This document shows positions 3,982 through 63,500 of a stretch of DNA of 64,000 nucleotides, in pieces. The notes beneath the pieces were generated by a model. That model saw only the letters and a program-made list of their open reading frames with translations. It was not told the origin of the DNA and ran no database searches. The DNA lies in the IMG/VR virus record IMGVR_UViG_3300042484_002457, positions 145,544-209,543 of that record, one strand, 5' to 3'. How positions within the stretch are numbered: position 1 is the stretch's first letter; each line of letters starts with the position of its first letter. The position numbers and the translations under genes were made by a program.

Positions 3982-4650
3982 TTATCTCGACTTGCAATGG
4001 TCCCCGTGCCATCTACCAAAGTGTCCGGGAGCAAATGATTTTTGGCAGTATACACATGAGATTCGTTCAGAGTGAGCAAATGCGTATTTTTCTTTTTGCT
4101 CTGTGGTTCTATTCAACTGCTGCTGCCTGATTATTTCTCTACGTTCAGGAGTCATTTGATCAATAGTTTTTTGTCTCAGTATTTGTTTCAGCTCGTTACT
4201 AATTGGGCCACGCTTGTGTCCAGTATTGCCAGATGTTTTACCTCGGCGAGCAATAGCTGCTTGATGGTTTTTTCTAACCTCAGGATCGTGCATTGGGTTG
4301 TTTGTTTTTGTGTGTATTGATTTAATTCTACTATATTGCTGCCTTAATAACTCGTATGTTCTTCCAGTTATTTTGTGTCGTTGTTGATTCTGGTTTTCTA
4401 AATTCGCCATAGTCCAGGCAGCATAGATCATCTTTTCTTTGTGAGGGCTAACAACCATTTTAGTCAGTAACCAATGACAAACAAAGTGTTCTCGTGCAGT
4501 TAAATCCACCAAATTTTCTTTGAGATTTGACCCATCTAAACTTCGTGGTATAATATGATGTCGTTCTTTGTATTCTGTTAGAGATCTTGTTTTTGCTCGT
4601 TGAACAATGTTGTTATACCATGTGGTATATTTGTTGTCAATAAATATCAT
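3982..4650 (-). CDS. free-standing HNH homing endonuclease with basic NUMOD3-like C-terminus
   Basis: NKYTTWY...ERHHIIPRSLDGSN...NLVDLTAREHFVCHWLL HNH motif; C-terminal CxxC...HGDHC; start at MIFIDNKY after SD AAAGGAG. Confidence 0.85.
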   Translation of the reverse strand: MIFIDNKYTTWYNNIVQRAKTRSLTEYKERHHIIPRSLDGSNLKENLVDLTAREHFVCHWLLTKMVVSPHKEKMIYAAWTMANLENQNQQRHKITGRTYELLRQQYSRIKSIHTKTNNPMHDPEVRKNHQAAIARRGKTSGNTGHKRGPISNELKQILRQKTIDQMTPERREIIRQQQLNRTTEQKEKYAFAHSERISCVYCQKSFAPGHFGRWHGDHCKSR

Positions 4651-4720
4651 TGCTGGTGCTCCTTTCAAGCATTAGAGTAGTTGGATATGTCCAGTATCGC
4701 GAACTACACCTTTATTTATA
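4651..4720 (-). promoter_or_regulatory. structured endonuclease leader: TATAAATA late promoter, nested hairpin, SD
   Basis: Near-identical architecture to 23113-23180 with compensatory changes. Confidence 0.7.
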
Positions 4721-4745
4721 AATAAACGAACAAAGATTTAACTAA

Positions 4746-5807
4746 ATGGGCAAAACAATAGTGATTCAACCGGGTGGTTATCATCCCTTTCACGCGGGCC
4801 ATCTCGCGCTTTATCAAAGTGCACGCCGTGCTTTTCCTGATGCCGAAGTGTTTGTGGCCGCCACCAACGACACATCAACACGACCTTTTCCGTTTGCTGT
4901 GAAAGAAAAACTGGCCAAGTTGGCCGGAGTTGAGCCTGGACATTTTGTGCAGGTCAAGTCGCCATTTAGAGCTGAAGAAATCACCAGCAGATTCAATCCT
5001 GAACAAGACGTCCTGATTTTTGTGCGCAGCGAAAAAGACGAAAATAAACCTCCGCAAGCTGGCGGCGTTAAAAAAGATGGTGCACCTGCATACTTGCAAC
5101 GGCTGGAAGATGCGCAGAGGCTGGAACCATTTGCCCGGCATGCATACATGGCTTACTTGCCCACAGTGGAGTTTGGTCCCGGAATGACGTCAGCTACAGA
5201 GATTCGTGCAGCATGGCCCAAGCTGAATGAAAAGCGCAAGACAGCTCTTGTGATGAGCTTGTATCCTGACACACAGCGAAATCCAGCCTTGGCAGCAGTA
5301 GTGGTCAAGATGTTGGACACTGCCATTGGTAGCACAGTGGACGAAAATCAAGGCTGGGCTGCTACATACACCAATGAAGGTAACAAGAATAAAAATTACG
5401 AAGCTGATCCTGAACTAAAACAATCAAAACTATTTGCTAAACAGCATTATTCGCAACACACCAATGATCCTGATATGGCTTTTGACAAGTGGGTACAGCG
5501 CAGCCTCATGCACAGCAAGCAAGACGATGTACAGCAGGATCAAATATTAAAACGTCTAACACAAAAAGTGGACATTCTAGCACGTCGTCTACAACAAGCA
5601 CAGTTGCCCGTGGGCGAAAATGCTGGACAAATGGCCGGAACACCAGCTGTGGGTGGTATGTGGGCCGGTTATCAGCAGCGTGAAAATCAGCCCGTGGACG
5701 AAGACTACGTTGAAGAAAAATGGAGCGCAAAATACAAGAGCAGTATCAATTGTGCCAATCCTAAGGGATTTAGTCAACAAGCTCACTGTGCAGGTCGCAA
5801 AAAATAA
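4746..5807 (+). CDS. HxGH (cytidylyltransferase-like) nucleotidyltransferase with appended short modules
   Basis: QPGGYHPFHAGH at N-terminus; C-terminal KWSAKYKSSINCANPKGFSQQAHCAGRKK module after VxE linkers. Confidence 0.7.
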   Translation: MGKTIVIQPGGYHPFHAGHLALYQSARRAFPDAEVFVAATNDTSTRPFPFAVKEKLAKLAGVEPGHFVQVKSPFRAEEITSRFNPEQDVLIFVRSEKDENKPPQAGGVKKDGAPAYLQRLEDAQRLEPFARHAYMAYLPTVEFGPGMTSATEIRAAWPKLNEKRKTALVMSLYPDTQRNPALAAVVVKMLDTAIGSTVDENQGWAATYTNEGNKNKNYEADPELKQSKLFAKQHYSQHTNDPDMAFDKWVQRSLMHSKQDDVQQDQILKRLTQKVDILARRLQQAQLPVGENAGQMAGTPAVGGMWAGYQQRENQPVDEDYVEEKWSAKYKSSINCANPKGFSQQAHCAGRKK

Positions 5808-5855
5808 CACAGTCGTTTATAATCCGTAAATACTACATCTTATTACGGAGAAAAC

Positions 5856-6749
5856 ATGGCTGACGCCCAACCCACAACTACACCCCCAACAGATCCCAAC
5901 GCACAAGAACAAATGAACATTCAAGTTGATTTGGACTATTTGCGTACAACTCGTGTGCACATCTGTATGCCCTGCTATGGCGGCCAGCTTACAGAATCAA
6001 CATTCATGAGTTTTATCAAATGGGCCAACATGGCTCGTCAATTAAGCATTGACTGGACCGTGGAAACCATGACCAACGAGAGCTTGATTTCACGTGCTAG
6101 AAACACGCTCACTGCCAAGTTCTTGCACACCGAAGGCTCCACACACTTGATGTTTATTGACGCTGACATTGGCTGGGAACCCTGGCACTTGTTGGTGTTG
6201 TTGAACCGCAAGGTTGATGTAATTGGTGGACTTTACCCCATGAAGAGCATGCCCATCAAGTGGTGTGTAAACGGCATTCCCGGCAAAGAAGATGGCGAAG
6301 ACAATCTTGTAGAAGTCACCAAAACTGGCACAGGCTTCTTGTTGATCAAGCGCGAGGTGTTTGACAAGCTAGACGCACACCCTGCTGTGCGAGCCTTTGC
6401 TAATGACATTGGTTTGCCCCCTGAACTCAACAAGTACATGAAAACCTACTTTGACACTGCTGTGCGCGAAGGTCGTTACTACTCAGAAGACTGGACATTC
6501 TGCGAAAATTGGCGCGACATTGGTGGGCAAGTGTTTGTGGACAAACGTGTGTTGCTCAAGCACACAGGCACATATGTGTTTGACGCTACCACACAGGACA
6601 AACTGTACTTTGAACTTGATGCTATTGCCAAGGCCAATACACAAAAAATCACACAAATGGTACCGCAGGGTGGACACGAAGTTGCTGCGGACATTCTTGT
6701 CCCGGCAGCTGAACCTGAAGTGCTGGCCAGTTCTGACAACAGCAAATAA
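5856..6749 (+). CDS. GT-A fold glycosyltransferase-like protein
   Basis: ICMPCYGG, ESLISRARN, HLMFIDADIGW (DxD), GTGFLLIKR, YYSEDW motifs. Confidence 0.7.
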   Translation: MADAQPTTTPPTDPNAQEQMNIQVDLDYLRTTRVHICMPCYGGQLTESTFMSFIKWANMARQLSIDWTVETMTNESLISRARNTLTAKFLHTEGSTHLMFIDADIGWEPWHLLVLLNRKVDVIGGLYPMKSMPIKWCVNGIPGKEDGEDNLVEVTKTGTGFLLIKREVFDKLDAHPAVRAFANDIGLPPELNKYMKTYFDTAVREGRYYSEDWTFCENWRDIGGQVFVDKRVLLKHTGTYVFDATTQDKLYFELDAIAKANTQKITQMVPQGGHEVAADILVPAAEPEVLASSDNSK

Positions 6750-6765
6750 CAGCACAACAGCCACC

Positions 6766-6793
6766 AGCGCCGGTTCCGCCGGCGCTTTCATTT
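6766..6793 (+). terminator. intrinsic terminator
   Basis: AGCGCCGG-TTCCG-CCGGCGCT then TTCATTT. Confidence 0.7.
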
Positions 6794-6811
6794 GTCCGCT
6801 AAATACACATT

Positions 6812-9800
6812 ATGAATATCGAAGAGTTAGATTCCTTCAATCTTGCAGACGCTGTGAAGTTTCACAATCAGTTAAATCCCCGATTGTGGGATCAGCGTGA
6901 ACATCTCAAGCCTGATGTGCACGCCAAGCTCATGGAAATTGCTAGAGATTTCCAAGAGTTTCTGGGCGTTCCTGACCTTGAAGTCAAGGACATCACAGTA
7001 TCTGGCTCAAATGCTGCATACAATTACACACCGCACAGCGATGTAGATCTACACCTTGTGGTGGATATGCCTGACGCTAAAAACAGCGAAGTGTTTCGCG
7101 AGCTGTTTGACGCCAAGAAATTCCAGTACAACGCTGAACATGACATTCGTATTGGCGGCTATGATGTAGAACTGTATGTGCAAGATGCTGAACAAGAGCA
7201 TCACTCACAGGGCATTTACAGCCTGTTGCAAAACCGTTGGATCAGTGTGCCCAAGAGACGCAAACCTGATGTAGATGATATCAGTGTGAAAAGCAAATAC
7301 CAAGATGTGGGACACAGAATTGAAGCTGCTATCCGTGGCGGTGACGCTGCACAAATGGAAGATGTTTGGAACAAACTACGTGTGATGCGCAAGCAGGGTC
7401 TTGAGCGTGAAGGCGAGTTTGCCCCAGAAAACATTGTGTTCAAGATGCTGCGCAACAACGGCACCATTGGCAACCTCAAACAAGCAAGACAGGCTGTGCG
7501 TGATCGAGAGCTGAGTCTTGCTGAAGTCAACCGCCCCAAGCAACGTGTGCATTATGGCTTTGTAAGTGAAAGCCCCGATGGTGTAAATCCCAGTACCAAG
7601 ATGTTTCTTGAAGAAGATGATGCCGAAAGTCTTGTAACTGAATTTATTTTTACCACGGCTGACAAGCTGGGCATTAAACGTATACCAAAAATTCATATAC
7701 ACACCAATGATGACTGGAGCAGAGAAAACAACAGTTTTGGAATGTTTGTTCCTGACACATATGAACTGCATGTGAGTTTGATAAATCGCCATCCCATGGA
7801 TGTGATGCGCACCATTGCGCACGAACTAGCACATGTCCGTCAACACGAGATCAAGCCGGTCAAACCCGGTGATGGAGAAACTGGAAGTGATGTTGAAAAC
7901 GAAGCGCATGCCATAGCTGGTATTGTCATGCGAGACTTTGCCAGCAGCCATCCTGAATATTTTGAAAAGCCTGCTGTGAGCGAAAGCTCGGGATACATTC
8001 CTACCCGAGCACAGGCTCAAGATCCTCGCTTTAAAATGGCCCTGACTGTGGACATCAAGCCAGGACAAACTGGTAAGGAAGCCAACAAGCTGGCCTTGCA
8101 AACAGATGCACAAGGCCGTCCAGCACTGTTGATGAAAACAGCAAACCTGCGTGAAGGCCGGATGCCGCAGCCCAGCCAAGGGCAGGGCCAGTATAGAGAT
8201 TTAAACAAGCCCCTGGGTCCAGAAACACCTCCTACCATGCCCGCAGGCACTGTCAAGGTAGATGTGAGTGATGTGTATGACTGGTACAAGCTGGGCAGTC
8301 ATATCAGCAACCTCAAAGGTCTGGGCAAACACGACTTTGGCGCAGGACCTCCTAGTACTATCATCAGTTTTGGTGATGAGGAAACTGAACACAAGTACAT
8401 CCAAGACCTTGAAAAAACTGGACTCACTACCACAGATATTGACCCCAAGGATCCCAAGCAGCCTCCAGGAATGAAACGTCAAAAGACTGATCCCACCTAC
8501 AACGTGGCAGAAGATGACATTGTAGAAAGCCTGCGTCAAGAATTTGCTTTGCTGGAAGACGAGTACATCAGCGAAATCAAAATGACCGGAAAGAACCTGC
8601 GAGCCGAAGCTGCTCAAACAGGTGCGCAGGCTGGCATGGAATTTGAAATGATTGTGCCCAACGTTGAGACCGAAGAGCTAGACCCTGAATACGAACCAGA
8701 CTGGGATCAGGATCAGCGTACTAGAAGCTTCAGTGACATTCGAGACTTTTTCCACGATGGAGACTACAACGGTCGTCGCGAAGCAGACAACCTAATGGAA
8801 GAAATACAAAACGAGTATGAAGAATGGCAAGCAGAACAAACTGACGAAGCCTGGGCTCGAGATGGAGTAGATTACATGCGTGACTTTGTTGAAGTCAATG
8901 ACTTGTTTGATCGTGAAGAAGCTATAGACACTGCTCGAGACGAGGTCATTGACGCTAACCCTGACTTGCCACCTGAAAGCAAAGACTTCCAGGACCTGCT
9001 TCGTGCCAGACTCGATGAACTACAAGAACAGTTTGTGCTAGAATCGTTTGAAGATCAAGGCCGCATCTACAATGACGCATTGCAAGCGTTTGCAGAAGAG
9101 CAAAGAGACGAATACGACGAACGCAGTTTCTTGGATGACAAGTATCCCATGATGACAGATATTCAAAGCAACTTTGATATTTCATGGCCCCACTACTACA
9201 ACATCAACGATGGTCAAGACAGTGGAGAAGTGGATGTAGATCAAGTAGCTGATGAGTTTGGCTCATACATGGGCAAACCTGTGAATGCCAGCAGACAATA
9301 CCATGGCGGTCGTCGCGAAGCAGGAACCTATGTAGTAGAACCCGACGGCAGCTTAGAAGGTGACAACCCAGGTGATGGTGGCCTTGAGTTTGTTAGTCCG
9401 CCCATGCCCATAGATGAAATGATTTCAGACTTGAACAAGGTCAAGGCCTGGGCAGACAAGACTGGTTGCTATACCAACGACTCTACAGGCTTGCACATCA
9501 ATATCTCAGTGCCCAATTATTCAATTGACAAACTGGACTATGTAAAATTGGCCATCCTCATGGGCGACGAATACATTCTGGACTTGTTTGGTCGCTCAGG
9601 CAACACCTATGCCAAATCAGCCATGGGCAAGATCAAGTCAGCACTGAAACAAAAACCCGAAGCGTCAGCACAAATCATGGACTTGATGAAACAAGGACTG
9701 GACGGTGCTGCAACCAAGGCCATACACACAGGTATCACAGACAAGTACACGTCAATCAACACCAAGACTGGCTATATTGAATTCCGTAGCCCCGGTGGTG

Positions 9801-10933: not shown

Positions 10934-11919
10934 TGAGAGCACAAGAATTTGTAACAGAACTGTTTGAGCCAGGCAAAAAGTGGCAGTGGAGTTTTACTGG
11001 CAGTGAAGAAGCAGTAGCAGTATTTCATGTTGGTGAAGTGCCTTACATGTTCCATGCATATGGCGCCGTCGGTGAATGGGAAGCAGAGTTCAAGCGGTAT
11101 GGTAACAAACTAGATCGATCGCAAAAGTTTGGACTAACTGGCACTGGTAACTCAGCAGAAGTCATGAGCACAGTGGTTGACATCATGCGAGCGTTCTTGG
11201 AAAAATACAAGGACAAGATACAAGTGCTGACATTCAGTGCCAAGGAAGATTCCCGTCAGGGTCTATATGCCCGAATGGTCAAACGACTGCTGCCCGACTG
11301 GACCATGAAACAATCCGGTGAGCACTTTGTTCTTGTGGCTCCCAAACAAGATGTCACAGAAACATGGGGTGTTGAAAAGTATCCTATTCCGCTGCCAATT
11401 GGGCAGTACCTTGCTGTTGGTAGTGATGAGTTTGCTCCGCCGGGCAACTATGCCAGTGCAGACGATCTTGTGGATGATGTGTACGACTTGATAGATGCAG
11501 GTGTTGAGCCCACAGTGGTTGCAGTTGATCCCAAGACTCTGTTGGCCACACAAGACTGGCTTAGTAACGAAGGCGGCGGCGATCCCTTGTTTGACGAGTA
11601 CCCGGACAAGCCTGTGATATACAAGAAGGCAGGCAAGCTGTACATCCTTGACGGGCATCACAGAACCACACGAGCTTGGAAAGCTGGTAGACCTATTTCA
11701 GTATACCTGTTTGGGGACGATCAACAAAACGAACTGGACGAAAACTTTGCAGATGGCCGAAACCCACAAGACAAAGGTGATTCAAAGCGTCACGGTATCA
11801 ATACCAAAGCATCAGTTAGTAGTCTACGCAAAACTGCCAAACAAGGCGGCCGCAAAGGACAACTGGCACACTGGCTGGCTAACATGAAGTCTGGTAGAGC
11901 AAAGGCCAAACGAAAATGA
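10933..11919 (+). CDS. modular protein with capsid-targeting-like N-terminus, central ParB/sulfiredoxin-like domain and basic tail
   Basis: MRAQEFVTE-LF start; LLATQDW...PVIYKK...YILDGHHR ParB-like core; tail after LDE. Confidence 0.7.
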   Translation: MRAQEFVTELFEPGKKWQWSFTGSEEAVAVFHVGEVPYMFHAYGAVGEWEAEFKRYGNKLDRSQKFGLTGTGNSAEVMSTVVDIMRAFLEKYKDKIQVLTFSAKEDSRQGLYARMVKRLLPDWTMKQSGEHFVLVAPKQDVTETWGVEKYPIPLPIGQYLAVGSDEFAPPGNYASADDLVDDVYDLIDAGVEPTVVAVDPKTLLATQDWLSNEGGGDPLFDEYPDKPVIYKKAGKLYILDGHHRTTRAWKAGRPISVYLFGDDQQNELDENFADGRNPQDKGDSKRHGINTKASVSSLRKTAKQGGRKGQLAHWLANMKSGRAKAKRK

Positions 11920-12377
11920 GCGCATATCGACTTGATCCTTTTTATGGCATTGGTGCTGTTTCCTTGAATGCAAACACCGCTAGAGCTCAGATAGAGCTGC
12001 GACCCAGTATGTTTTTGAATTTGGCACACAGACTTGATGCCAACAGTGAATGTGCACTCCGTATAATACCCTACATCAGAACCAGATTGCAGTCAAGAGG
12101 TATTGGATATCCAATACTGCACATTGCGCCGCCTTTGGAATGGCGTAATAACGATTTTTCCAAACCTTGTCAAGTTATTGAAAGCAACGGACGCCATCGT
12201 ATGCATGCAATTATGGAGGTTCAAGGCGATGAACCTATTCCAGTATTGTTGGTACCTTGGCAAGATATTACACAACAAGAGTTAAATACATGGCTACCTC
12301 GCATGCGTGAGCAAATGCTCAGTCAGGATGGCGAGTTGGTATCAGGTCAATTATGGGATCAAACACATGAGAGCTAA
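11916..12377 (+). CDS. hypothetical protein, ParB-like motif
   Basis: VIESNGRHRMHAI...PIPV resembles ParB-N (D/E)GxHR core. Confidence 0.55.
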   Translation: MSAYRLDPFYGIGAVSLNANTARAQIELRPSMFLNLAHRLDANSECALRIIPYIRTRLQSRGIGYPILHIAPPLEWRNNDFSKPCQVIESNGRHRMHAIMEVQGDEPIPVLLVPWQDITQQELNTWLPRMREQMLSQDGELVSGQLWDQTHES

Positions 12378-12567
12378 AGAGTTTGTTAATGAAAGTGTTG
12401 CGCCGGGCTTTCACGTGTATCAAGCACGAGTCAAAGTCAACAATCCTCTTTACTCTAACAGTATTGATGTTGCAGTGTTTGCCAAAGGTCCGGCTATGGC
12501 TCGCGCTCTGTTACAGGCACAGTACGGCAAAGATAGTGTTGTGACCAACGTTACACAAATTGCATAA
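12367..12567 (+). CDS. small protein with capsid-targeting-like N-terminus
   Basis: Internal ATG 12367 gives MRAKEFVNE-SVAP (66 aa); followed by CTGTGGC-GCAAA-GCCACAG hairpin. Confidence 0.7.
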   Translation: MRAKEFVNESVAPGFHVYQARVKVNNPLYSNSIDVAVFAKGPAMARALLQAQYGKDSVVTNVTQIA

Positions 12568-12601
12568 TTCTCTGTGGCGCAAAGCCACAGATACATAAGT
12601 G

Positions 12602-13441
12602 ATGATAGACATTGTTACTGTTGTTTTCCAAGAAGAAATTCCAATTTTAAAAGTACAAGCAGAGTCAGTTGCACGATACTGCCAAAATATTGGTATCCGT
12701 AATATCTATGTGGTAGTCAATGATGACGAAGACACCATACACAAAATTGATGCTGGTTGGTGGGGTGACTTGGCCAATCATGTGTTGGTAGTACCGCGTT
12801 CAGCGTTTAGCACACAGTTTATAGATAATGGTTGGGTCAGTCAGCAGGCTCTTAAATTGCTAGCGGCTGCTATGAGCCATAACACCTGGAGCATGGTACT
12901 AGATGCCAAAACAGTATTTGTGCGTGAGCTGCAACTGACTGATTTATTGGACTGTGATGGCCGTGCACGAGTAGGCACATTACCAGTGTTCCCAGTGTTT
13001 GAACCCACACGACTCATGATCAATGAGTTGTACAACATAGACATGAAAGATCAACTGGGGCCAGGCGGCGTGCCCTTTTTCTTTCAAAATGATGTAGTGC
13101 GACTCATGATTGCAGAAACAACATTCTTGGCCAAGAAAAGTTTTCCCATATGGTTTCAAGCAAAAGGACGCATCACTGAGTTTATGCTGTACTCAGGATA
13201 CTTGCAATATAGATTTGGCGGATACGATACATTTTACTCGTCTGACTCAGCATTTGGTGCAGTGAACATCAGCCATGGCGAAGTTGATCAATTCAACACC
13301 AAGCTCAAGCAAATGCAAGATCCACGTACTCTTACAGTGAGTATACATCGTGGCGCCTGGAGTCAACTCAGCGCAGACCAACGCCAAGAATATCAGTTTA
13401 GATTAATTGAAGCAGGCCTAATAGGAGCACACAGTTTATGA
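12602..13441 (+). CDS. GT-A-like glycan-related protein (paralog of 15785-16666)
   Basis: GWVSQQALKL, VLDAKTVF, TEFMLY motifs shared with 15785-16666. Confidence 0.55.
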   Translation: MIDIVTVVFQEEIPILKVQAESVARYCQNIGIRNIYVVVNDDEDTIHKIDAGWWGDLANHVLVVPRSAFSTQFIDNGWVSQQALKLLAAAMSHNTWSMVLDAKTVFVRELQLTDLLDCDGRARVGTLPVFPVFEPTRLMINELYNIDMKDQLGPGGVPFFFQNDVVRLMIAETTFLAKKSFPIWFQAKGRITEFMLYSGYLQYRFGGYDTFYSSDSAFGAVNISHGEVDQFNTKLKQMQDPRTLTVSIHRGAWSQLSADQRQEYQFRLIEAGLIGAHSL

Positions 13442-13950
13442 AAGCCCTGTGCTTGGTTGCACATCCCGACGACTGTGTTATATTTGCCTACAGCTATATT
13501 CATAACCATCCTGAACTGGATTGGACGATTGGCTATTTGACCTACACTGCTGACAGTGAACGTGGTGTTGAGTTATCAGCATTTTGGCAACGACGAAACA
13601 TACCTTGTGTGTTCCTTGGCTTTGTTGATGACTACCGAGATCAGGAGCAGCAACAATTGTTACAATGGTACGGTATTGATGCCATGGCCGAGTGTGCCAA
13701 TCTTGCCCGACAATACGACTTAGTTTTGACCCACGATGAACACGGTGATTACGGGCACATACATCATCAAGTGGTGCACGATGCAGTAAAACTCCATCCA
13801 CGTTTGATTACATTTGCCAAGCCTGGTCAAGGTACAACATACACAGTACCGCCAGGCACATACACTCTTGATGAATTGCCCATGCACGGTGAAATTGTTG
13901 CCAGCTTTCATAGCCATGAACACAAAAACAGTTACAAGGAATCAAAATGA
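13438..13950 (+). CDS. PIG-L/LmbE-family deacetylase-like protein
   Basis: LVAHPDDC and THDEHGDYGHIHHQ metal-binding motifs. Confidence 0.75.
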   Translation: MKALCLVAHPDDCVIFAYSYIHNHPELDWTIGYLTYTADSERGVELSAFWQRRNIPCVFLGFVDDYRDQEQQQLLQWYGIDAMAECANLARQYDLVLTHDEHGDYGHIHHQVVHDAVKLHPRLITFAKPGQGTTYTVPPGTYTLDELPMHGEIVASFHSHEHKNSYKESK

Positions 13951-56497: not shown

Positions 56498-57448
56498 ATG
56501 CAACCTAAATTAGTAAAATGGGTTTTGGCGCACGAGCCCATTGATATTTTTATCAAAGCCGCCGAAAAATTTACCGAAGTCATTGACAAGTTGGCCCCAG
56601 GTCAACTCAAAATAGAAGTTATGACTCTGAGCGAGTACGCAAATCGATACAACAACGGCAAAAAAATTACCAAGCACGATTTATTGCAATTAATGGAAGA
56701 CGATCTCATTGAGATGAGCCAGACATACAGTTATGTGTTAGGTAACAAATACGCACCTGACATGCATGTTGTAGACATGCCTTTTTTATTTCGTGACCAT
56801 GATCATGCTGCCAACGTATTTGAGGGCAAAATTGGTGCTAAGTTGTTAGACAGCTACGGTCATAATAGCAACTTACAAGGTTTAGCGTTTACATATTCGG
56901 GCGGTTTTAGAAATATTCCGTTTAGCAAAAATGTTGCAACACTAAACGACTTGGCCGGAGCTCGTGTGCGGGTGACTTCCAATCCAATTTGCGAAGCAAT
57001 TTTTGAAAGTATTGGTGCTACTCCGGTTACGTTTGATATTGAAGATTTGGCTGATCGCATGGAAGATGGAACTGTAGAAGGCGGCGAAAGCTCGTGGCCA
57101 CGCATTTATGCTTGCCGTCAAAACGAAGTAAGTAATGTAATTTTTGACACCGAACACAATCTGTTGACCACTAATATCATTGCCAACAAACAATGGATGC
57201 AAGGCTTGCCGGTTGAGTTACAAGCCAAAATTAAACAAGCCGCAATTGAAGCGGCACGCCATGAGCGTGACATTAGTGTTGCAGATGTCGAGCGTGTGGG
57301 ATCTCTTGCTCGTGCTGATGGCATTCGTGTTATCAAGTTTTCTGAAGAAGATCAAACTCACTTTAAGAAAGCAACAGAATCAGTTTACACCAAGTTTGAA
57401 GACTACTTTACACCAGGGTTGGTTGACAGCATTCGCACTTTACAGTAA
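56498..57448 (+). CDS. dctP: TRAP transporter DctP-family solute-binding protein, no signal peptide
   Basis: DMPFLFRD..HA, GFRNI, DLAGARVRV, VEGGES, H.L..NII.ANK.W..LP. Confidence 0.85.
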   Translation: MQPKLVKWVLAHEPIDIFIKAAEKFTEVIDKLAPGQLKIEVMTLSEYANRYNNGKKITKHDLLQLMEDDLIEMSQTYSYVLGNKYAPDMHVVDMPFLFRDHDHAANVFEGKIGAKLLDSYGHNSNLQGLAFTYSGGFRNIPFSKNVATLNDLAGARVRVTSNPICEAIFESIGATPVTFDIEDLADRMEDGTVEGGESSWPRIYACRQNEVSNVIFDTEHNLLTTNIIANKQWMQGLPVELQAKIKQAAIEAARHERDISVADVERVGSLARADGIRVIKFSEEDQTHFKKATESVYTKFEDYFTPGLVDSIRTLQ

Positions 57449-57467
57449 ACTACAGTTTATTGCTGTA

Positions 57468-57725
57468 TGAAGCAAAGAGAAAAGGATCCAAGACCCGGGG
57501 GCAGTTCCCGGCATCTCCACCTAAGTGTATGTTGTATATTTAGGTGGGGATGACATAGATATCGATTGGGTCAAGAGTAACAGAGTGGACAGCTCGGCAA
57601 TGTGAAAGCCGTAGGATTGGGGTCTCCCGGTCGTAGAAGCAAAAAACGTAAATGCAAACGACGAACAGTTCGCTTTAGCCGCCTAAACTCGGCTTAGGGT
57701 AGGAAATACCTCGTAACAGAAACCC
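57468..57725 (+). ncRNA. ssrA: circularly permuted (two-piece) tmRNA, tag ANDEQFALAA
   Basis: T-arm and acceptor 3' strand CATCTCC-ACC (57512-57521) precede 5' strand GGGGATG (57546-57552) with G3.U70; intervening hairpin; resume GCA 57654 to TAA 57686; 5' boundary approximate. Confidence 0.9.
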
Positions 57726-57727
57726 CC

Positions 57728-57755
57728 AAAAAGGGGCTTGGCCCCTTTTTCTTTT
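57728..57755 (+). terminator. intrinsic (bidirectional) terminator
   Basis: AAAAAGGGGC-TTG-GCCCCTTTTT. Confidence 0.85.
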
Positions 57756-59910: not shown

Positions 59911-60792
59911 ATGAAGAAAATTATAATTACAGCCGCTTTGTTGGCTACTTGCGCCCTGGCTTCTGCTCAGACCACTATGTACGGTCGTGTCAACGCCACT
60001 GTTGACAGCACTAAAACTGGTGCTATTCGTGCAGACAGCATTGTCAATGACATCAGTCACATTGGCTTCAGCGTCAAAGAAGACCTCGGAGGCGGATTGT
60101 CAGCTCGTGCTGTGATCGAAACCTCTGTGGCCACCCAAGACCCCACCACTGGTGGCAACACTCAATTGGGCAACCGCCAAAGCACAGTTGGCTTGGCCAG
60201 CAAGTTAGGCAGCATTGATGTTGGCCGCAACGTGCATGGTTTGTTTACCACAGCTGGACAAGGCGACGCTTTTGGTGCATTGTATGGCAGCATCGCTGGA
60301 GATGTTCATGACCTGCGTGGTCTGCGACTCAGCAACGGCGTGTTCGCTCGTGTCAACGGCCCATTGGGTACTACCTTGGGTGCTGATCGTACCTACACCG
60401 CTGCAGGCACAGAAACCACTGTTTACAGTGCAACTGGCAAATTAGGCCCTGTCAACGCTGGCGTGGCTCAATTTGAGCAAGGTGCCGAGAAATCAACTGT
60501 GGTCAGTGCCAGCACCAAGCTTGGCAACACTGGCGTGTTCTACAGCTACAGTGACAACCAAGGTGCTGTTGCTGCCAGAGGCAACCTAGTGGGCGTGAGC
60601 CAGAAAGTCGGTGCTTACACTGTGAAAGCTAGCTACGGTGATACCAACACAGCCGTCAAGGCTTACAACGTTGGCGCTGAGTATGCTCTCAGCAAGCGCA
60701 CTGACGTATTGGTCAGCTATCGCAACGTTGACAAGACTGGCACTGCCAATGACATCAAGCAAGTTGGCGTAGGTGTTACACATCGCTTCTGA
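59911..60792 (+). CDS. Gram-negative (betaproteobacterial-type) outer-membrane porin
   Basis: Signal peptide; TMYGRV, SHIGFSVKEDLGGGLSA, YALSKRT, C-terminal VGVTHRF. Confidence 0.9.
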   Translation: MKKIIITAALLATCALASAQTTMYGRVNATVDSTKTGAIRADSIVNDISHIGFSVKEDLGGGLSARAVIETSVATQDPTTGGNTQLGNRQSTVGLASKLGSIDVGRNVHGLFTTAGQGDAFGALYGSIAGDVHDLRGLRLSNGVFARVNGPLGTTLGADRTYTAAGTETTVYSATGKLGPVNAGVAQFEQGAEKSTVVSASTKLGNTGVFYSYSDNQGAVAARGNLVGVSQKVGAYTVKASYGDTNTAVKAYNVGAEYALSKRTDVLVSYRNVDKTGTANDIKQVGVGVTHRF

Positions 60793-61431: not shown

Positions 61432-61508
61432 GCCCTGGTGACGGAATTGGTATACGTGTTGGTCTTAGAAGCCAAATTTTGGGAGTTCGAGTCTCCCCTG
61501 GGGCACCA
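61432..61508 (+). tRNA. tRNA-Leu(TAG), short variable loop
   Basis: GCCCTGG/CTGGGGC, TTGGT-CTTAGAA-GCCAA, V loop ATTTT, CCA. Confidence 0.9.
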
Positions 61509-61517
61509 AGATACTAA

Positions 61518-61723
61518 GATGATACTTAGTAAGATGAGTAGATGGAAACCGACCCGGGAGAGACTTCCCGGGCTTCAGCAGCATCTGAGGTGGCTGACGA
61601 ACGATAGGCAAAGTCGGTCCAGTAGGGGTAAGAAAAGTATCATCAGCGGAAAGAGCTGCTGGAGGACAGAAGTTTGGGCACATCCTCGGAGGGGGTGGTT
61701 AGTCTTAACGCCGTGTAATCCTC
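61518..61723 (+). ncRNA. candidate structured ncRNA within tRNA cluster
   Basis: GATGATACTT/AAGTATCATC, ACCGAC/GTCGGT, CCCGGGA/TCCCGGG helices. Confidence 0.5.
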
Positions 61724-61734
61724 TAAGAATTTAT

Positions 61735-61809
61735 ACTGGGTTCGTCTATCGGTTAGGACAGCTGGTTTTCAACCAGCCAAGACGGGTTCGATTCCCGTAC
61801 CCAGTACCA
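61735..61809 (+). tRNA. tRNA-Glu(TTC)
   Basis: ACTGGGT/ACCCAGT, GCTGG-TTTTCAA-CCAGC, CCA. Confidence 0.9.
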
Positions 61810-61954: not shown

Positions 61955-61994
61955 TCGAACTCTGCTAAATACTATGGTATTAGATGGAGTTCGA
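61955..61994 (+). promoter_or_regulatory. SD-sequestering hairpin with late promoter in the loop
   Basis: TCGAACTC 61955-61962 / GAGTTCGA 61987-61994 covers GGAG; TAAATA 61966-61971. Confidence 0.75.
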
Positions 61995-61995
61995 T

Positions 61996-62472
61996 ATGAA
62001 AAAAGTTTGTCCCAAATGCGGCACATTACATGAAAAGAATGGTAATTTTTGCTCAAGAAGTTGTGCAAATTCCAGGTCCTGGACTGTTGATGCAAAGCAG
62101 AAAAAAAGTAAAGCATTGAAGAAATTCATTGCAGAAAACCCAATCTGGGAGGAGCAGCGCCTTGCTGCTATGCCCAAAATGATTGAAAATTTGAAACAAA
62201 CTTTGCTTGAAAAAAACAACCTTAGGTTTTCTGAAGGAAAAATAACAAGCAGAGAAGCCATTAAGAAACAACTAATTGCATTACACGGAGAAATCTGTAG
62301 CGTATGCAGTCTTAGTGCTCATTGGCATGGGCACTTCTTATCGTTGCATGTTGATCATGTTGATGGTAATAGTAAAAATAATATGCCAGATAACGTTAGA
62401 CTACTGTGCCCAAATTGTCATAGTCAGACTGATACGTATGCTGGAAAGAAGCATAGAAAGATTAAGATCTAA
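61996..62472 (+). CDS. HNH endonuclease inserted in tRNA cluster
   Basis: CPKC...FCSRSCAN; CSVC...LHVDHVDGN..NN...NVRLLCPNCH. Confidence 0.9.
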   Translation: MKKVCPKCGTLHEKNGNFCSRSCANSRSWTVDAKQKKSKALKKFIAENPIWEEQRLAAMPKMIENLKQTLLEKNNLRFSEGKITSREAIKKQLIALHGEICSVCSLSAHWHGHFLSLHVDHVDGNSKNNMPDNVRLLCPNCHSQTDTYAGKKHRKIKI

Positions 62473-62653: not shown

Positions 62654-62729
62654 GGTCTTAAAGTGTTCATGGACGCACGATGGCTTGTCACGCCATAAGA
62701 GTGGGGATCGTTACCCCCTAAGACCGCCA
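62654..62729 (+). tRNA. tRNA-Asp(GTC), second copy
   Basis: GGTCTTA/TAAGACC, ATGGC-TTGTCAC-GCCAT, T-loop ATCGTTA, CCA. Confidence 0.9.
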
Positions 62730-62732
62730 AGT

Positions 62733-62942
62733 TTTGAAAGTGTCAGCAAGTGAAGTCACGTTATGCAGTATTCTTCGAAGGTACTGAGTAATAGAAGGCA
62801 AGCGGGTTCGACTCCCGACCGATCGGAAGATCGGTGTAGCATGGTTACCACGCTGGATGAATCCCAAGTGACGTACCGAACCCCGTCCGGACTTGTTAAA
62901 TCGGGTGAATGGTGCCTATAACAGGGTGGCACTACTTTCAAA
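62733..62942 (+). ncRNA. candidate ~210 nt structured RNA with a T-arm-like element
   Basis: TTTGAAAGT/ACTTTCAAA closing stem, GTCAC/GTGAC, CAGTA/TACTG, CGGG-TTCGACT-CCCG, CCGATC-GGAA-GATCGG. Confidence 0.55.
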
Positions 62943-62951
62943 TTCAACAAT

Positions 62952-63029
62952 GGGCTGTGACTGTGTAAATGGCTAACAGCAACCAGTAACTCTGGTTGGT
63001 CAGCGGTTCGACTCCGCTACAGTCCACCA
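62952..63029 (+). tRNA. non-canonical tRNA: Ala-type acceptor (G3.U70) with AAC anticodon
   Basis: GGGCTGT/ACAGTCC-ACCA; AACCA-GTAACTC-TGGTT; AGCGG-TTCGACT-CCGCT. Confidence 0.75.
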
Positions 63030-63035
63030 ATTTTT

Positions 63036-63110
63036 GTCGCATTAGACTTCTGGTGAGGTCATCACCCTTTCAAGGTGACCAGACGGGATCGTAACCCGTA
63101 TGCGACTCCA
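63036..63110 (+). tRNA. tRNA-Glu(TTC), second copy
   Basis: GTCGCAT/ATGCGAC, TCACC-CTTTCAA-GGTGA, T-loop ATCGTAA, U73, CCA. Confidence 0.9.
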
Positions 63111-63196
63111 TTGATAAACACACTCACAGATCCGCCCGAGTAGTAAGGGAGACAGCGACTAACCGTTGAAGGACTGTTTAAAAGTGTGTTTTTCAA
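63111..63196 (+). ncRNA. candidate small multibranch RNA
   Basis: AAACACACT/AGTGTGTTT closing stem, ACAG/CTGT, TCC/GGA, CCC/GGG, CAGCG/CGTTG. Confidence 0.45.
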
Positions 63197-63197
63197 T

Positions 63198-63298
63198 GGG
63201 AGTGTTGCTAATACTGGCCTAAGGGCGAGATTTATATCCTCGTAAGCACCGTCTAGATAAGGCGGCGAATGTGGGTTCAATTCCCACCACTCCTACCA
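63198..63298 (+). tRNA. non-canonical tRNA with TAT (Ile) anticodon and long variable arm
   Basis: GGGAGTG/CACTCCT-ACCA; CGAG-ATTTATATC-CTCG; V arm CCGTCT/AGGCGG; GTGGG-TTCAATT-CCCAC. Confidence 0.75.
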
Positions 63299-63304
63299 AT
63301 TAAA

Positions 63305-63485
63305 CTGATCAGCCTGCGTCTAAAACTCAATGACGATGGGCCCAACTACCGGGGACACCTGTTACTCCACTGCCTCTGGGGATTAAGTTACCAGACTGCT
63401 AGTCACAGTTGTGCTATGTTGGTGGAAGGAAGTGAGCGCAGAGATGCGTTCAGCACCTTTAAACGCAGGGTAGTAGGCGGATCAG
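63305..63485 (+). ncRNA. candidate ~180 nt structured RNA
   Basis: CTGATC/GATCAG and CCTGCGTCTAAA/TTTAAACGCAGG closing helices; GAGCGCA-GAGA-TGCGTTC. Confidence 0.5.
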
Positions 63486-63500
63486 TTTATCCAAAACTGT

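Follow-up and report, generated by a model that had tools for sequence, protein, structure and literature searches.

A family of structured RNAs of about 220 nt in lake-phage tRNA gene arrays combines a rearranged tRNA elbow module with a self-complementary loop

A 218-nt element in a lake-phage genome belongs to a previously undescribed family of structured non-coding RNAs that occupy a "tRNA slot" inside same-strand phage tRNA gene arrays, contain a tRNA-elbow module in rearranged order and carry a self-complementary loop, and for which membership of the Y RNA family is not supported. Literature searches found no description of such a family, and no Rfam 15 family matches apart from a weak partial hit to YrlA. 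The window analysed here is the last 64 kb (64,000 nt, positions 145,544 to 209,543) of the 209.5-kb IMG/VR phage record IMGVR_UViG_3300042484_002457, which CheckV estimates at 58% complete and to which similar DNA is present in many lake-water metagenomes. Positions 61.3–63.3 kb of the window are a dense same-strand tRNA array, interrupted by an HNH homing-endonuclease ORF at 61984–62472, and a permuted tmRNA of the beta, or betaproteobacterial, type lies about 5 kb upstream of the element at 57410–57752. The element lies directly between tRNA-Asp (62654–62729) and an uncalled tRNA-like stretch (62950–63031). Phage tRNA arrays are usually read only as codon-supply or anti-defence tRNA sets, and this family shows that a tRNA slot can also hold a conserved, highly expressed RNA built partly from tRNA parts.

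A preliminary description of positions 62733–62942, made from the sequence alone, had proposed a 210-nt RNA with an internal T-arm mimic, closed by a 9-bp stem, and this observation is confirmed. The 9-nt closing stem is formed by TTTGAAAGT (62733–62741) and ACTTTCAAA (62934–62942), which are 100% complementary, the T-arm mimic CGGG-TTCGACT-CCCG lies at 62803–62817, the hairpin (A)CCGATC-GGAA-GATCGG(T) at 62818–62835, and the long-range helix joins GTCAC (62755–62759) to GTGAC (62868–62872), with no CCA. Folding of the single sequence gave no significant stability, with a minimum free energy of −62 kcal/mol, a z score of −1.05 and 31 of 200 shuffled sequences folding as well, and the minimum-energy structure mispaired the 3′ hairpin with the 5′ strand; it was replaced by a comparative structure. 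Two further inverted repeats, GGGTTCG/CGAACCC and AGTCAC/GTGACT, are specific to this phage or lie outside the element and are not conserved.

To determine whether the element recurs, a signature of the T-loop, 9 nt, a GNRA tetraloop, 7 nt and GUAGC was used to scan IMG/VR, returning six true homologues among chance tRNA–tRNA junctions. Their alignment showed that homology starts exactly at the end of the upstream tRNA's CCA and ends at CAAAUUCA, that the flanks differ between contigs and that the closing stem carries compensatory changes. The conserved unit (AAGUUUUG...CAAAUUCA, 62729–62946, plus strand) is therefore slightly larger than first described, beginning in this phage at the last A of the tRNA-Asp CCA. 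Scans with two further conserved blocks brought the set to 69 viral contigs, a metagenome scan returned at least 120 hits, indicating that the family is common in lakes, and a profile search found the element in 174 phage or metagenome contigs with unrelated flanks, one copy each, of which 154 are full length and 106 are unique, at 204–245 nt. A scan of 185,579 cellular species genomes gave five chance matches and a single true copy, in a Haliscomenobacter MAG, where it again lies between tRNAs. A blastn search of the GenBank phage collection found no relative of the region, only tRNA and HNH matches, and Rfam searches at the gathering threshold, and at E ≤ 10 over 2.8 kb and over 261 nt, gave only the partial YrlA hit.

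A structure was derived by eye from the alignments and mapped onto an 18-sequence seed alignment, in which 94.3% of cells are paired, 22 pairs have changes on both sides and no shuffle in 500 reaches the observed values, whereas sliding the partners by 1–3 columns leaves 35–48% paired. A covariance model built from this seed matched the present element with 242.5 bits over model positions 1–219 and was used to re-align 80 matches, giving 93.8% paired cells against 34–45% when slid and compensatory changes in 43 of 53 modelled pairs, again reached by 0 of 500 shuffles, although this second alignment is fitted to the model. Covariance-model hits of 19.2 bits in four other contigs proved to be an ordinary tRNA plus flank and were set aside as false positives. 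The closing stem P1, the hairpins P3, S2 and P9, the T-stem, the capped arm and the D-like stem are well supported, while the long-range helix P2 and the 3-bp P7 are always compatible but almost invariant and so are only weakly supported.

The closing stem P1 pairs 62733–62742 with 62933–62942, the core 7 bp being G62736–G62742, whereas U62733–35 may extend it but never vary. P1 shows UA/AU and AU/GC changes and paired 2-nt insertions in three members, and its 3′ strand is continuous with that of the terminal hairpin P9 (62912–62932, GUGCC-UAUAACAGGGU-GGCAC), in which all five pairs are compensatory and 100% paired. The resulting 5 + 7 layer stack forms a continuous 12-layer helix reminiscent of an acceptor/T minihelix, although members with a 2-bp longer P1 break a strict 12-bp ruler. 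The 3′ tail AAAUUCA (62940–62946) stands in place of NCCA, CAAAUUCA ends 96 of 105 unique members, and the next tRNA-like gene starts about 4 nt later. The possibility that AGUUUU is an array-wide tRNA leader, which would place the mature 5′ end at G8 of the element, is not supported, since the leaders of 635 array tRNAs are generically AU-rich with UUUU only third, so that the 5′ end can be placed only between U5 and G8.

Helix P2 (GUCAC, 62755–62759, with GUGAC, 62868–62872), also recovered by RNAalifold, is paired in 98% of cells, mostly invariant or GC/GU. It encloses P3 (62760–62792), in which 9 of 12 pairs are compensatory and the loop UUCGAA (62774–62779), a T-loop-like pentad, is found in 101 of 105 members, its closing pair being C-G but G-C in one member. 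P3 is followed by a junction ARAAGG, with AAGG invariant, and a 3–5 nt variable linker (62793–62802), then by the T-arm mimic with its 4-bp CGGG/CCCG stem and 7-nt loop UUCGACU (62803–62817), the capped arm ACCGAUC-GGAA-GAUCGGU (62818–62835) and the D-like arm GUA-GCAUGGU-UAC (62836–62848). A stem pair of the T-arm covaries as UA/CG/AU, all seven pairs of the capped arm covary, and all three pairs of the D-like arm covary with 97.7% paired. An initial assignment of the D-arm (UAGC...GCUG) was rejected because its 3′ strand CUGG is invariant while the supposed partner is not.

The order P3, T-arm, capped hairpin and D-like arm constitutes a circularly permuted tRNA top half, so that the preliminary statement that there is no acceptor stem is only half right, since the GGAA hairpin is itself the capped equivalent of that stem. 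Across 105 parsed unique members, the T-loop is UUCRANN in 105, the D-like loop (mostly GUAANGG) carries GG in 105 and the T-stem has 4 Watson–Crick pairs. The capped arm is the least conserved part, being 6–12 bp long and GNRA-capped in 81 of 99 members but absent in 6 of 105, and it is also absent in a divergent subfamily. The conserved feature is therefore the elbow module rather than an acceptor stem. Loss of the T-loop or of a D-loop-like partner in homologues had been named in advance as grounds for rejecting elbow mimicry, and both are kept, so the idea survives, although the T-loop is a common architectural motif and may be purely structural.

Outside the tRNA-like module, the single strand J1/2, UCAGCAAGUGAA (62743–62754), is identical in 97 of 105 members with no covarying partner found, the mini-hairpin P7 (62854–62866, UGG-AUGAAUC-CCA) lies within the nearly invariant block CUGGAyGrAkCCCAAGUGA and is 100% paired but with only GC-to-GU changes, and the single strand UGAAUGG (62906–62912) is conserved, UGAAU being shared by both 3′-domain subtypes. 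Pairing of CAAGU in J1/2 with ACUUG in the S2 loop was considered, but that partner is not conserved in other members. These near-invariant strands resemble catalytic cores more than scaffolds, and the two T-loop-type pentads recall the double T-loop elbow-docking motif of RNase P, T-box and the L1 stalk, which, with the obligatory tRNA-array context, raises the possibility of a miniature RNase P-like or other ribozyme, or a guide docking tRNA elbows, that would act on the neighbouring pre-tRNAs. However, no RNase P or self-cleaving ribozyme model in Rfam 15 matched even at E ≤ 10 in the 261-nt search, the metatranscriptome contigs show no sign of self-cleavage, and interdigitation of the two T-loops is only conjectural, so we consider this reading improbable.

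The S2 stem-loop (62882–62905, CCCG-UCCGGACUUGUUAAAU-CGGG) presents the self-complementary hexamer UCCGGA at 62886–62891, within an 8-nt palindrome at 62885–62892. The stem covaries (CCCG/CGGG, CCUG/CAGG, CCCA/UGGG, CCCU/AGGG) and closes a 13–19 nt loop, which starts with the hexamer in subtype A and has it centrally in subtype B. The hexamer is palindromic in 104 of 106 unique members (CGGCCG in 59, CUCGAG in 18, UCCGGA in 13, GCCGGC in 10, GUCGAC in 2, CCCGGG in 1 and (G)CCUAGG(C) in 1), one member has GUCGCC, a single substitution away from its relative's GUCGAC, and the divergent subfamily has CCGCGG, CGGCCG and GGCGCC at the equivalent place; nine distinct palindromic sequences were seen. 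A GC-rich palindrome somewhere in 60 nt of the 3′ domain is common by chance (39% of shuffles), so the argument rests on a fixed structural position at which paired substitutions at positions 1/6, 2/5 and 3/4, such as UCCGGA/GCCGGC, CUCGAG/GUCGAC and CCGCGG/CGGCCG, preserve self-complementarity. A hexamer cannot fold on itself, and thus the simplest reading is intermolecular loop–loop pairing, which predicts a kissing-loop homodimer, although the palindrome could serve something else, such as a dimeric protein site. Halves of the palindrome do not covary by type with the upstream CCGAG. A second helix (CCGA/UCGG, CCGAA/UUCGG in one member and CUUG/CAAG in another) also covaries and overlaps the S2 3′ strand, so it may be an alternative conformation and the loop may not always be presented as drawn.

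All 59 copies with at least 100 nt of flank lie in same-strand tRNA arrays with no opposite-strand tRNA nearby, 39 beginning flush with the upstream tRNA's CCA and 41 being followed by a tRNA within 30 nt, typically 4–7 nt, while the neighbouring tRNA identities differ widely. No protein gene travels with the element, the best neighbour being shared by 7 of 71 loci. Four freshwater metatranscriptomes from three studies hold contigs over the element, and in two of them the summed depth over 62763–62916 is about 4,100–8,700, against about 20–120 on the flanking tRNAs, which are under-represented in such libraries, and zero on the HNH ORF in all four runs, which argues against DNA carry-over. As these depths are summed over assembled contigs at least 85% alike, they show that the family is expressed, not strictly this phage's copy, and they say nothing firm about ends, adapter junctions at 62743/4, 62910 and 62915 not matching the predicted termini. 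The tRNA slot, the stem at the ends, the perfect T-arm and the presence of several odd tRNAs and a permuted tmRNA in the same array could suggest a degenerate, interrupted, permuted or intron-bearing tRNA gene, or a second tmRNA piece, with no function of its own. This reading is close to refuted, since neither ARAGORN nor the Rfam tRNA and tmRNA models (at E ≤ 10) call the element, there is no anticodon arm, CCA or tag reading frame, the T-arm is not next to the 3′ strand of the closing stem, and covariation of the non-tRNA helices P3, S2 and P9 and invariance of non-tRNA strands across 106 unique copies show purifying selection on the whole 220 nt, with the RNA being abundant.

Given the tRNA-like module, we tested whether the element is a YrlA-type Y RNA, whose closing stem would bind a Ro60/Rsr protein of phage or host while the module would recruit another factor such as PNPase. 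The V-T-AS-D module order that defines the tRNA-like domain of YrlA (PMC4201824) is present, with conserved T- and D-loop nucleotides, YrlA is the only Rfam family touching the element in the 261-nt search, and YrlA RNAs occur in phages. However, the match to RF02553 is 13.8 bits (E = 3.6) against a gathering threshold of 69 and covers only the T-arm and hairpin (model positions 31–62), although the genuine YrlA of phage Bxz1 also scores only 32.5 bits. The GNCGAAN0-1G motif, a putative Rsr contact, is absent from the 5′ 40 nt, AAGUUUUGAAAGUGUCAGCAAGUGAAGUCACGUUAUGCAG, and the nearest look-alike, UUCGAAGG, is in the P3 loop and starts with U rather than G. With the Bxz1 YrlA, about 190 nt upstream of Ro gp220, as positive control, the Ro60 profiles phrog_850 and NF041674 found nothing in this phage's 209.5 kb, whereas a YrlA RNA would be encoded within about 4 kb of, and on the same strand as, a Ro60/Rsr gene. 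Of the five largest carrier genomes (215–345 kb), only one has Ro60, on the same strand but 12.6 kb away and with its own upstream hairpin RNAs, and a 99%-complete carrier has none. Copies sit in tRNA arrays rather than next to rsr. A host-encoded Rsr cannot be excluded, but we regard membership of this family as very unlikely.

The interpretation offered in the preliminary description, a tRNA-mimic scaffold or decoy likened to YrlA, is thus partly supported, in that the elbow-like module is genuine while Y RNA membership is not supported. The analysis itself establishes an essentially phage-restricted structured RNA family in tRNA slots, present at high level in freshwater metatranscriptomes, with a fold of three parts, namely P1 stacked on P9, P2 enclosing P3 and the permuted module, and a 3′ domain presenting the palindrome; that this is a real family with a conserved elbow module is close to certain. 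The remaining steps are inferred. Co-transcription with the tRNAs and excision by the ordinary tRNA-processing enzymes is likely, with RNase P cleavage at the downstream tRNA's 5′ end defining the 3′ side and the P1/P9 helix perhaps serving as a minihelix-like handle. The T-loop and GG loop would dock to form a tRNA-like elbow, and dimerisation through the palindrome, somewhat more likely than not, would give a particle displaying two elbows. That this particle acts during infection as a stable decoy or scaffold for a factor reading tRNA elbows, or T-arms more generally, such as a host tRNA-processing or tRNA-modifying enzyme, the ribosome or an anti-phage tRNA-directed nuclease, is a tentative hypothesis, and the account taken as a whole is about as likely as not. 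A more speculative and rather unlikely extension is a new class of homodimeric phage RNA sequestering or redirecting such a factor, be it a tRNA-directed defence nuclease, RNase P or another processing enzyme, or the ribosomal E-site/L1 stalk, with the overlapping alternative helix (CCGA/UCGG against CCCG/CGGG) switching exposure of the dimerisation loop.

Alternatively, the element may be an architectural, self-assembling RNA of the ROOL/GOLLD/OLE kind, in which the T-loop, GNRA loop and palindrome are merely building blocks for tertiary and quaternary structure and tRNA mimicry plays no role. The phage location next to tRNAs, the covarying self-complementary loop, the GNRA-capped peripheral arm, the long invariant junction strands and the generic nature of T-loops favour this view, which overlaps ours on the dimer and differs only on whether the elbow is read by a partner. 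Against it are the far smaller size (about 220 nt against 580–800+), the lack of a ROOL or GOLLD hit in Rfam at the gathering threshold or at E ≤ 10, and the constant pairing of the T-loop with an adjacent GG loop in tRNA order within a tRNA slot, which points to tRNA ancestry or mimicry, and we consider it possible but unlikely. At about 220 nt, with a predicted dimer interface open to compensatory mutation, the RNA suits cryo-EM or crystallography and pull-downs, could show what a displayed tRNA elbow is for in phage infection and is a ready candidate for a new Rfam family.

The family offers a small, tractable relative of three poorly understood groups. YrlA (RF02553, PMC4201824) has the same circularly permuted order of an upstream hairpin, T-arm, capped acceptor-like stem-loop and D-arm, pairs its 5′ and 3′ ends elsewhere, occurs in phages, lacks CCA in most members and is recognised by tRNA enzymes, although its tRNA-like module has no known partner. 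The present RNA works architecturally like the tRNA-like half of YrlA but is about twice as long (around 220 nt against 114 model positions), mostly does not co-occur with Ro60/Rsr, has a dispensable capped arm and the additional conserved parts J1/2, P7, S2 and P9, and shows no detectable sequence homology to YrlA outside the T-arm and hairpin. Permuted two-piece tmRNA shares the gene order of T-arm, acceptor 3′ strand, loop and acceptor 5′ strand, but here the acceptor loop is a closed GGAA tetraloop with no CCA and no processing segment, there is no tag ORF or pseudoknot series, and the tmRNA models do not match 62729–62946. ROOL and GOLLD are phage or prophage RNAs of unknown function, often beside tRNA islands, rich in covarying helices and assembling into homo-oligomers through kissing loops and A-minor contacts (bioRxiv 10.1101/2024.12.08.627333), GOLLD also being lake-derived; they are 2.5–4 times larger and have no tRNA-elbow module as a core feature, and the multimerisation predicted here from a single palindrome suggests a dimer rather than a cage. 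The bacteriophage T4 stable RNAs rnaC and rnaD (species 1 and 2), of unknown function for about 50 years (PMC9697503), are likewise non-tRNA RNAs encoded head-to-tail with tRNAs on the same strand, with 1–6 nt spacers, in a cluster that also holds a homing endonuclease, and rnaC contains a canonical T-arm. They are shorter (139 and 119 nt), the rnaC T-arm lies beside the 3′ end as in a tRNA rather than internally in permuted order, no palindromic loop was noted, and our covariance model, run with filters off, gives at most 7.2 bits, on the T-arm only, indicating no homology. The closest analogues are therefore YrlA in module order, T4 rnaC/rnaD in genomic arrangement, and ROOL and GOLLD as phage tRNA-island RNAs that multimerise.

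A second unannotated stretch with very high metatranscriptome depth was found at positions 61531-61684, between tRNA-Leu (61432-61508) and tRNA-Glu (61735-61809), where depth reached about 11,400-13,800 in freshwater metatranscriptome X19 and about 1,100-1,600 in X24. The 226-nt spacer folds better than shuffled sequences (z = -2.56), but has no Rfam family and no homologue in any of the loci retrieved, and may be another abundant phage RNA. Further stem-closed, non-coding stretches are present downstream of the array at 63111-63197 and 63300-63500 (for example, AAACACAC...GUGUGUUU and ACUGAUC...GAUCAGU), and one RNA contig spans 63035-63190. The whole 61.3-63.6 kb region looks like an RNA island. 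Auxiliary-looking genes lie next to this island at 56498-57448 and 59911-60792, namely a DctP-family TRAP solute-binding protein (E = 1.8e-37) and an ORF whose N-terminus resembles the Neisseria-type porin PorB (E = 5.5e-13). A phage-encoded permuted (two-piece) tmRNA of the betaproteobacterial type is located at 57410-57752 (115.7 and 109.9 bits), which hints at a betaproteobacterial host.

Several tRNA genes of the array are themselves unusual. The tRNA-Asp(GUC) at 62654-62729 and the tRNA-Glu(UUC) at 63036-63110 were called by ARAGORN but not by the Rfam tRNA model, and their T-loops read AUCGUUA and AUCGUAA, so that the usual U54/A58 positions appear swapped to A54/U58. The same odd tRNA-Asp precedes the conserved RNA element in many other contigs. 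At 62950-63031, an uncalled tRNA-like gene has a 7-bp acceptor (GGGCUGU/ACAGUCC) and a T-arm (GCGG-UUCGACU-CCGC) and ends in CCACCA, although its anticodon loop is atypical and its only match is a weak hit to a tmRNA model (18.8 bits, 62968-63029). A 98-nt tRNA at 63198-63295, scoring 41 bits with Rfam, carries a 32-nt insertion in the D region and was not called by ARAGORN.

Other large stem-closed RNAs occupy tRNA slots in the arrays of carrier loci L072, L039, and L063, in the gap upstream of the element, and in loci L034 and L059. One of these is a conserved RNA of about 190 nt (GUCUAGUUGG...CACUAGGCUCCA) with a CCA end, and another is about 130 nt (GUAGUUC...CCUACUAC), while several ARAGORN-negative tRNA-like genes in these arrays are preceded by AGUUUU. 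In carrier genome G002, about 420 nt of non-coding sequence between a tRNA and the start of the Ro60 gene (locus L099, 2908-3330, minus strand, upstream of Ro60) holds three hairpins that share an AACAGCAA motif. These hairpins are not recognized by the Rfam YrlA model, but may be this phage's own Ro-associated RNAs.

Within the element itself, two mutually exclusive helices at 62876-62904 share the same 3′ strand, with CCGA (62876-79) and UCGG (62901-04) set against CCCG (62882-85) and CGGG (62902-05). Both show compensatory changes in different members (CUUG/CAAG in L025 and CCGAA/UUCGG in L015), suggesting a possible conformational switch around the palindromic loop. A divergent sister subfamily of about 187-230 nt was also found in L015 (4527-4713, minus strand), L002 (about 8280-8540, minus strand), and L103-L105. 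This subfamily shares the closing stem and AAUUCA tail, a GUGAAAG junction, a T-arm (CGG-UUCGAGU-CCG), a GGCAAC loop, the palindromic stem-loop, and the last hairpin, but lacks the AS arm (the capped acceptor-stem equivalent) and the sequence of helix P2. L015 and L019 carry both types about 0.8 kb apart.

The tRNA array is also interrupted by an HNH homing-endonuclease ORF at 61984-62472, and this insertion inside the array parallels that of SegB inside the tRNA cluster of bacteriophage T4 (locus L106).
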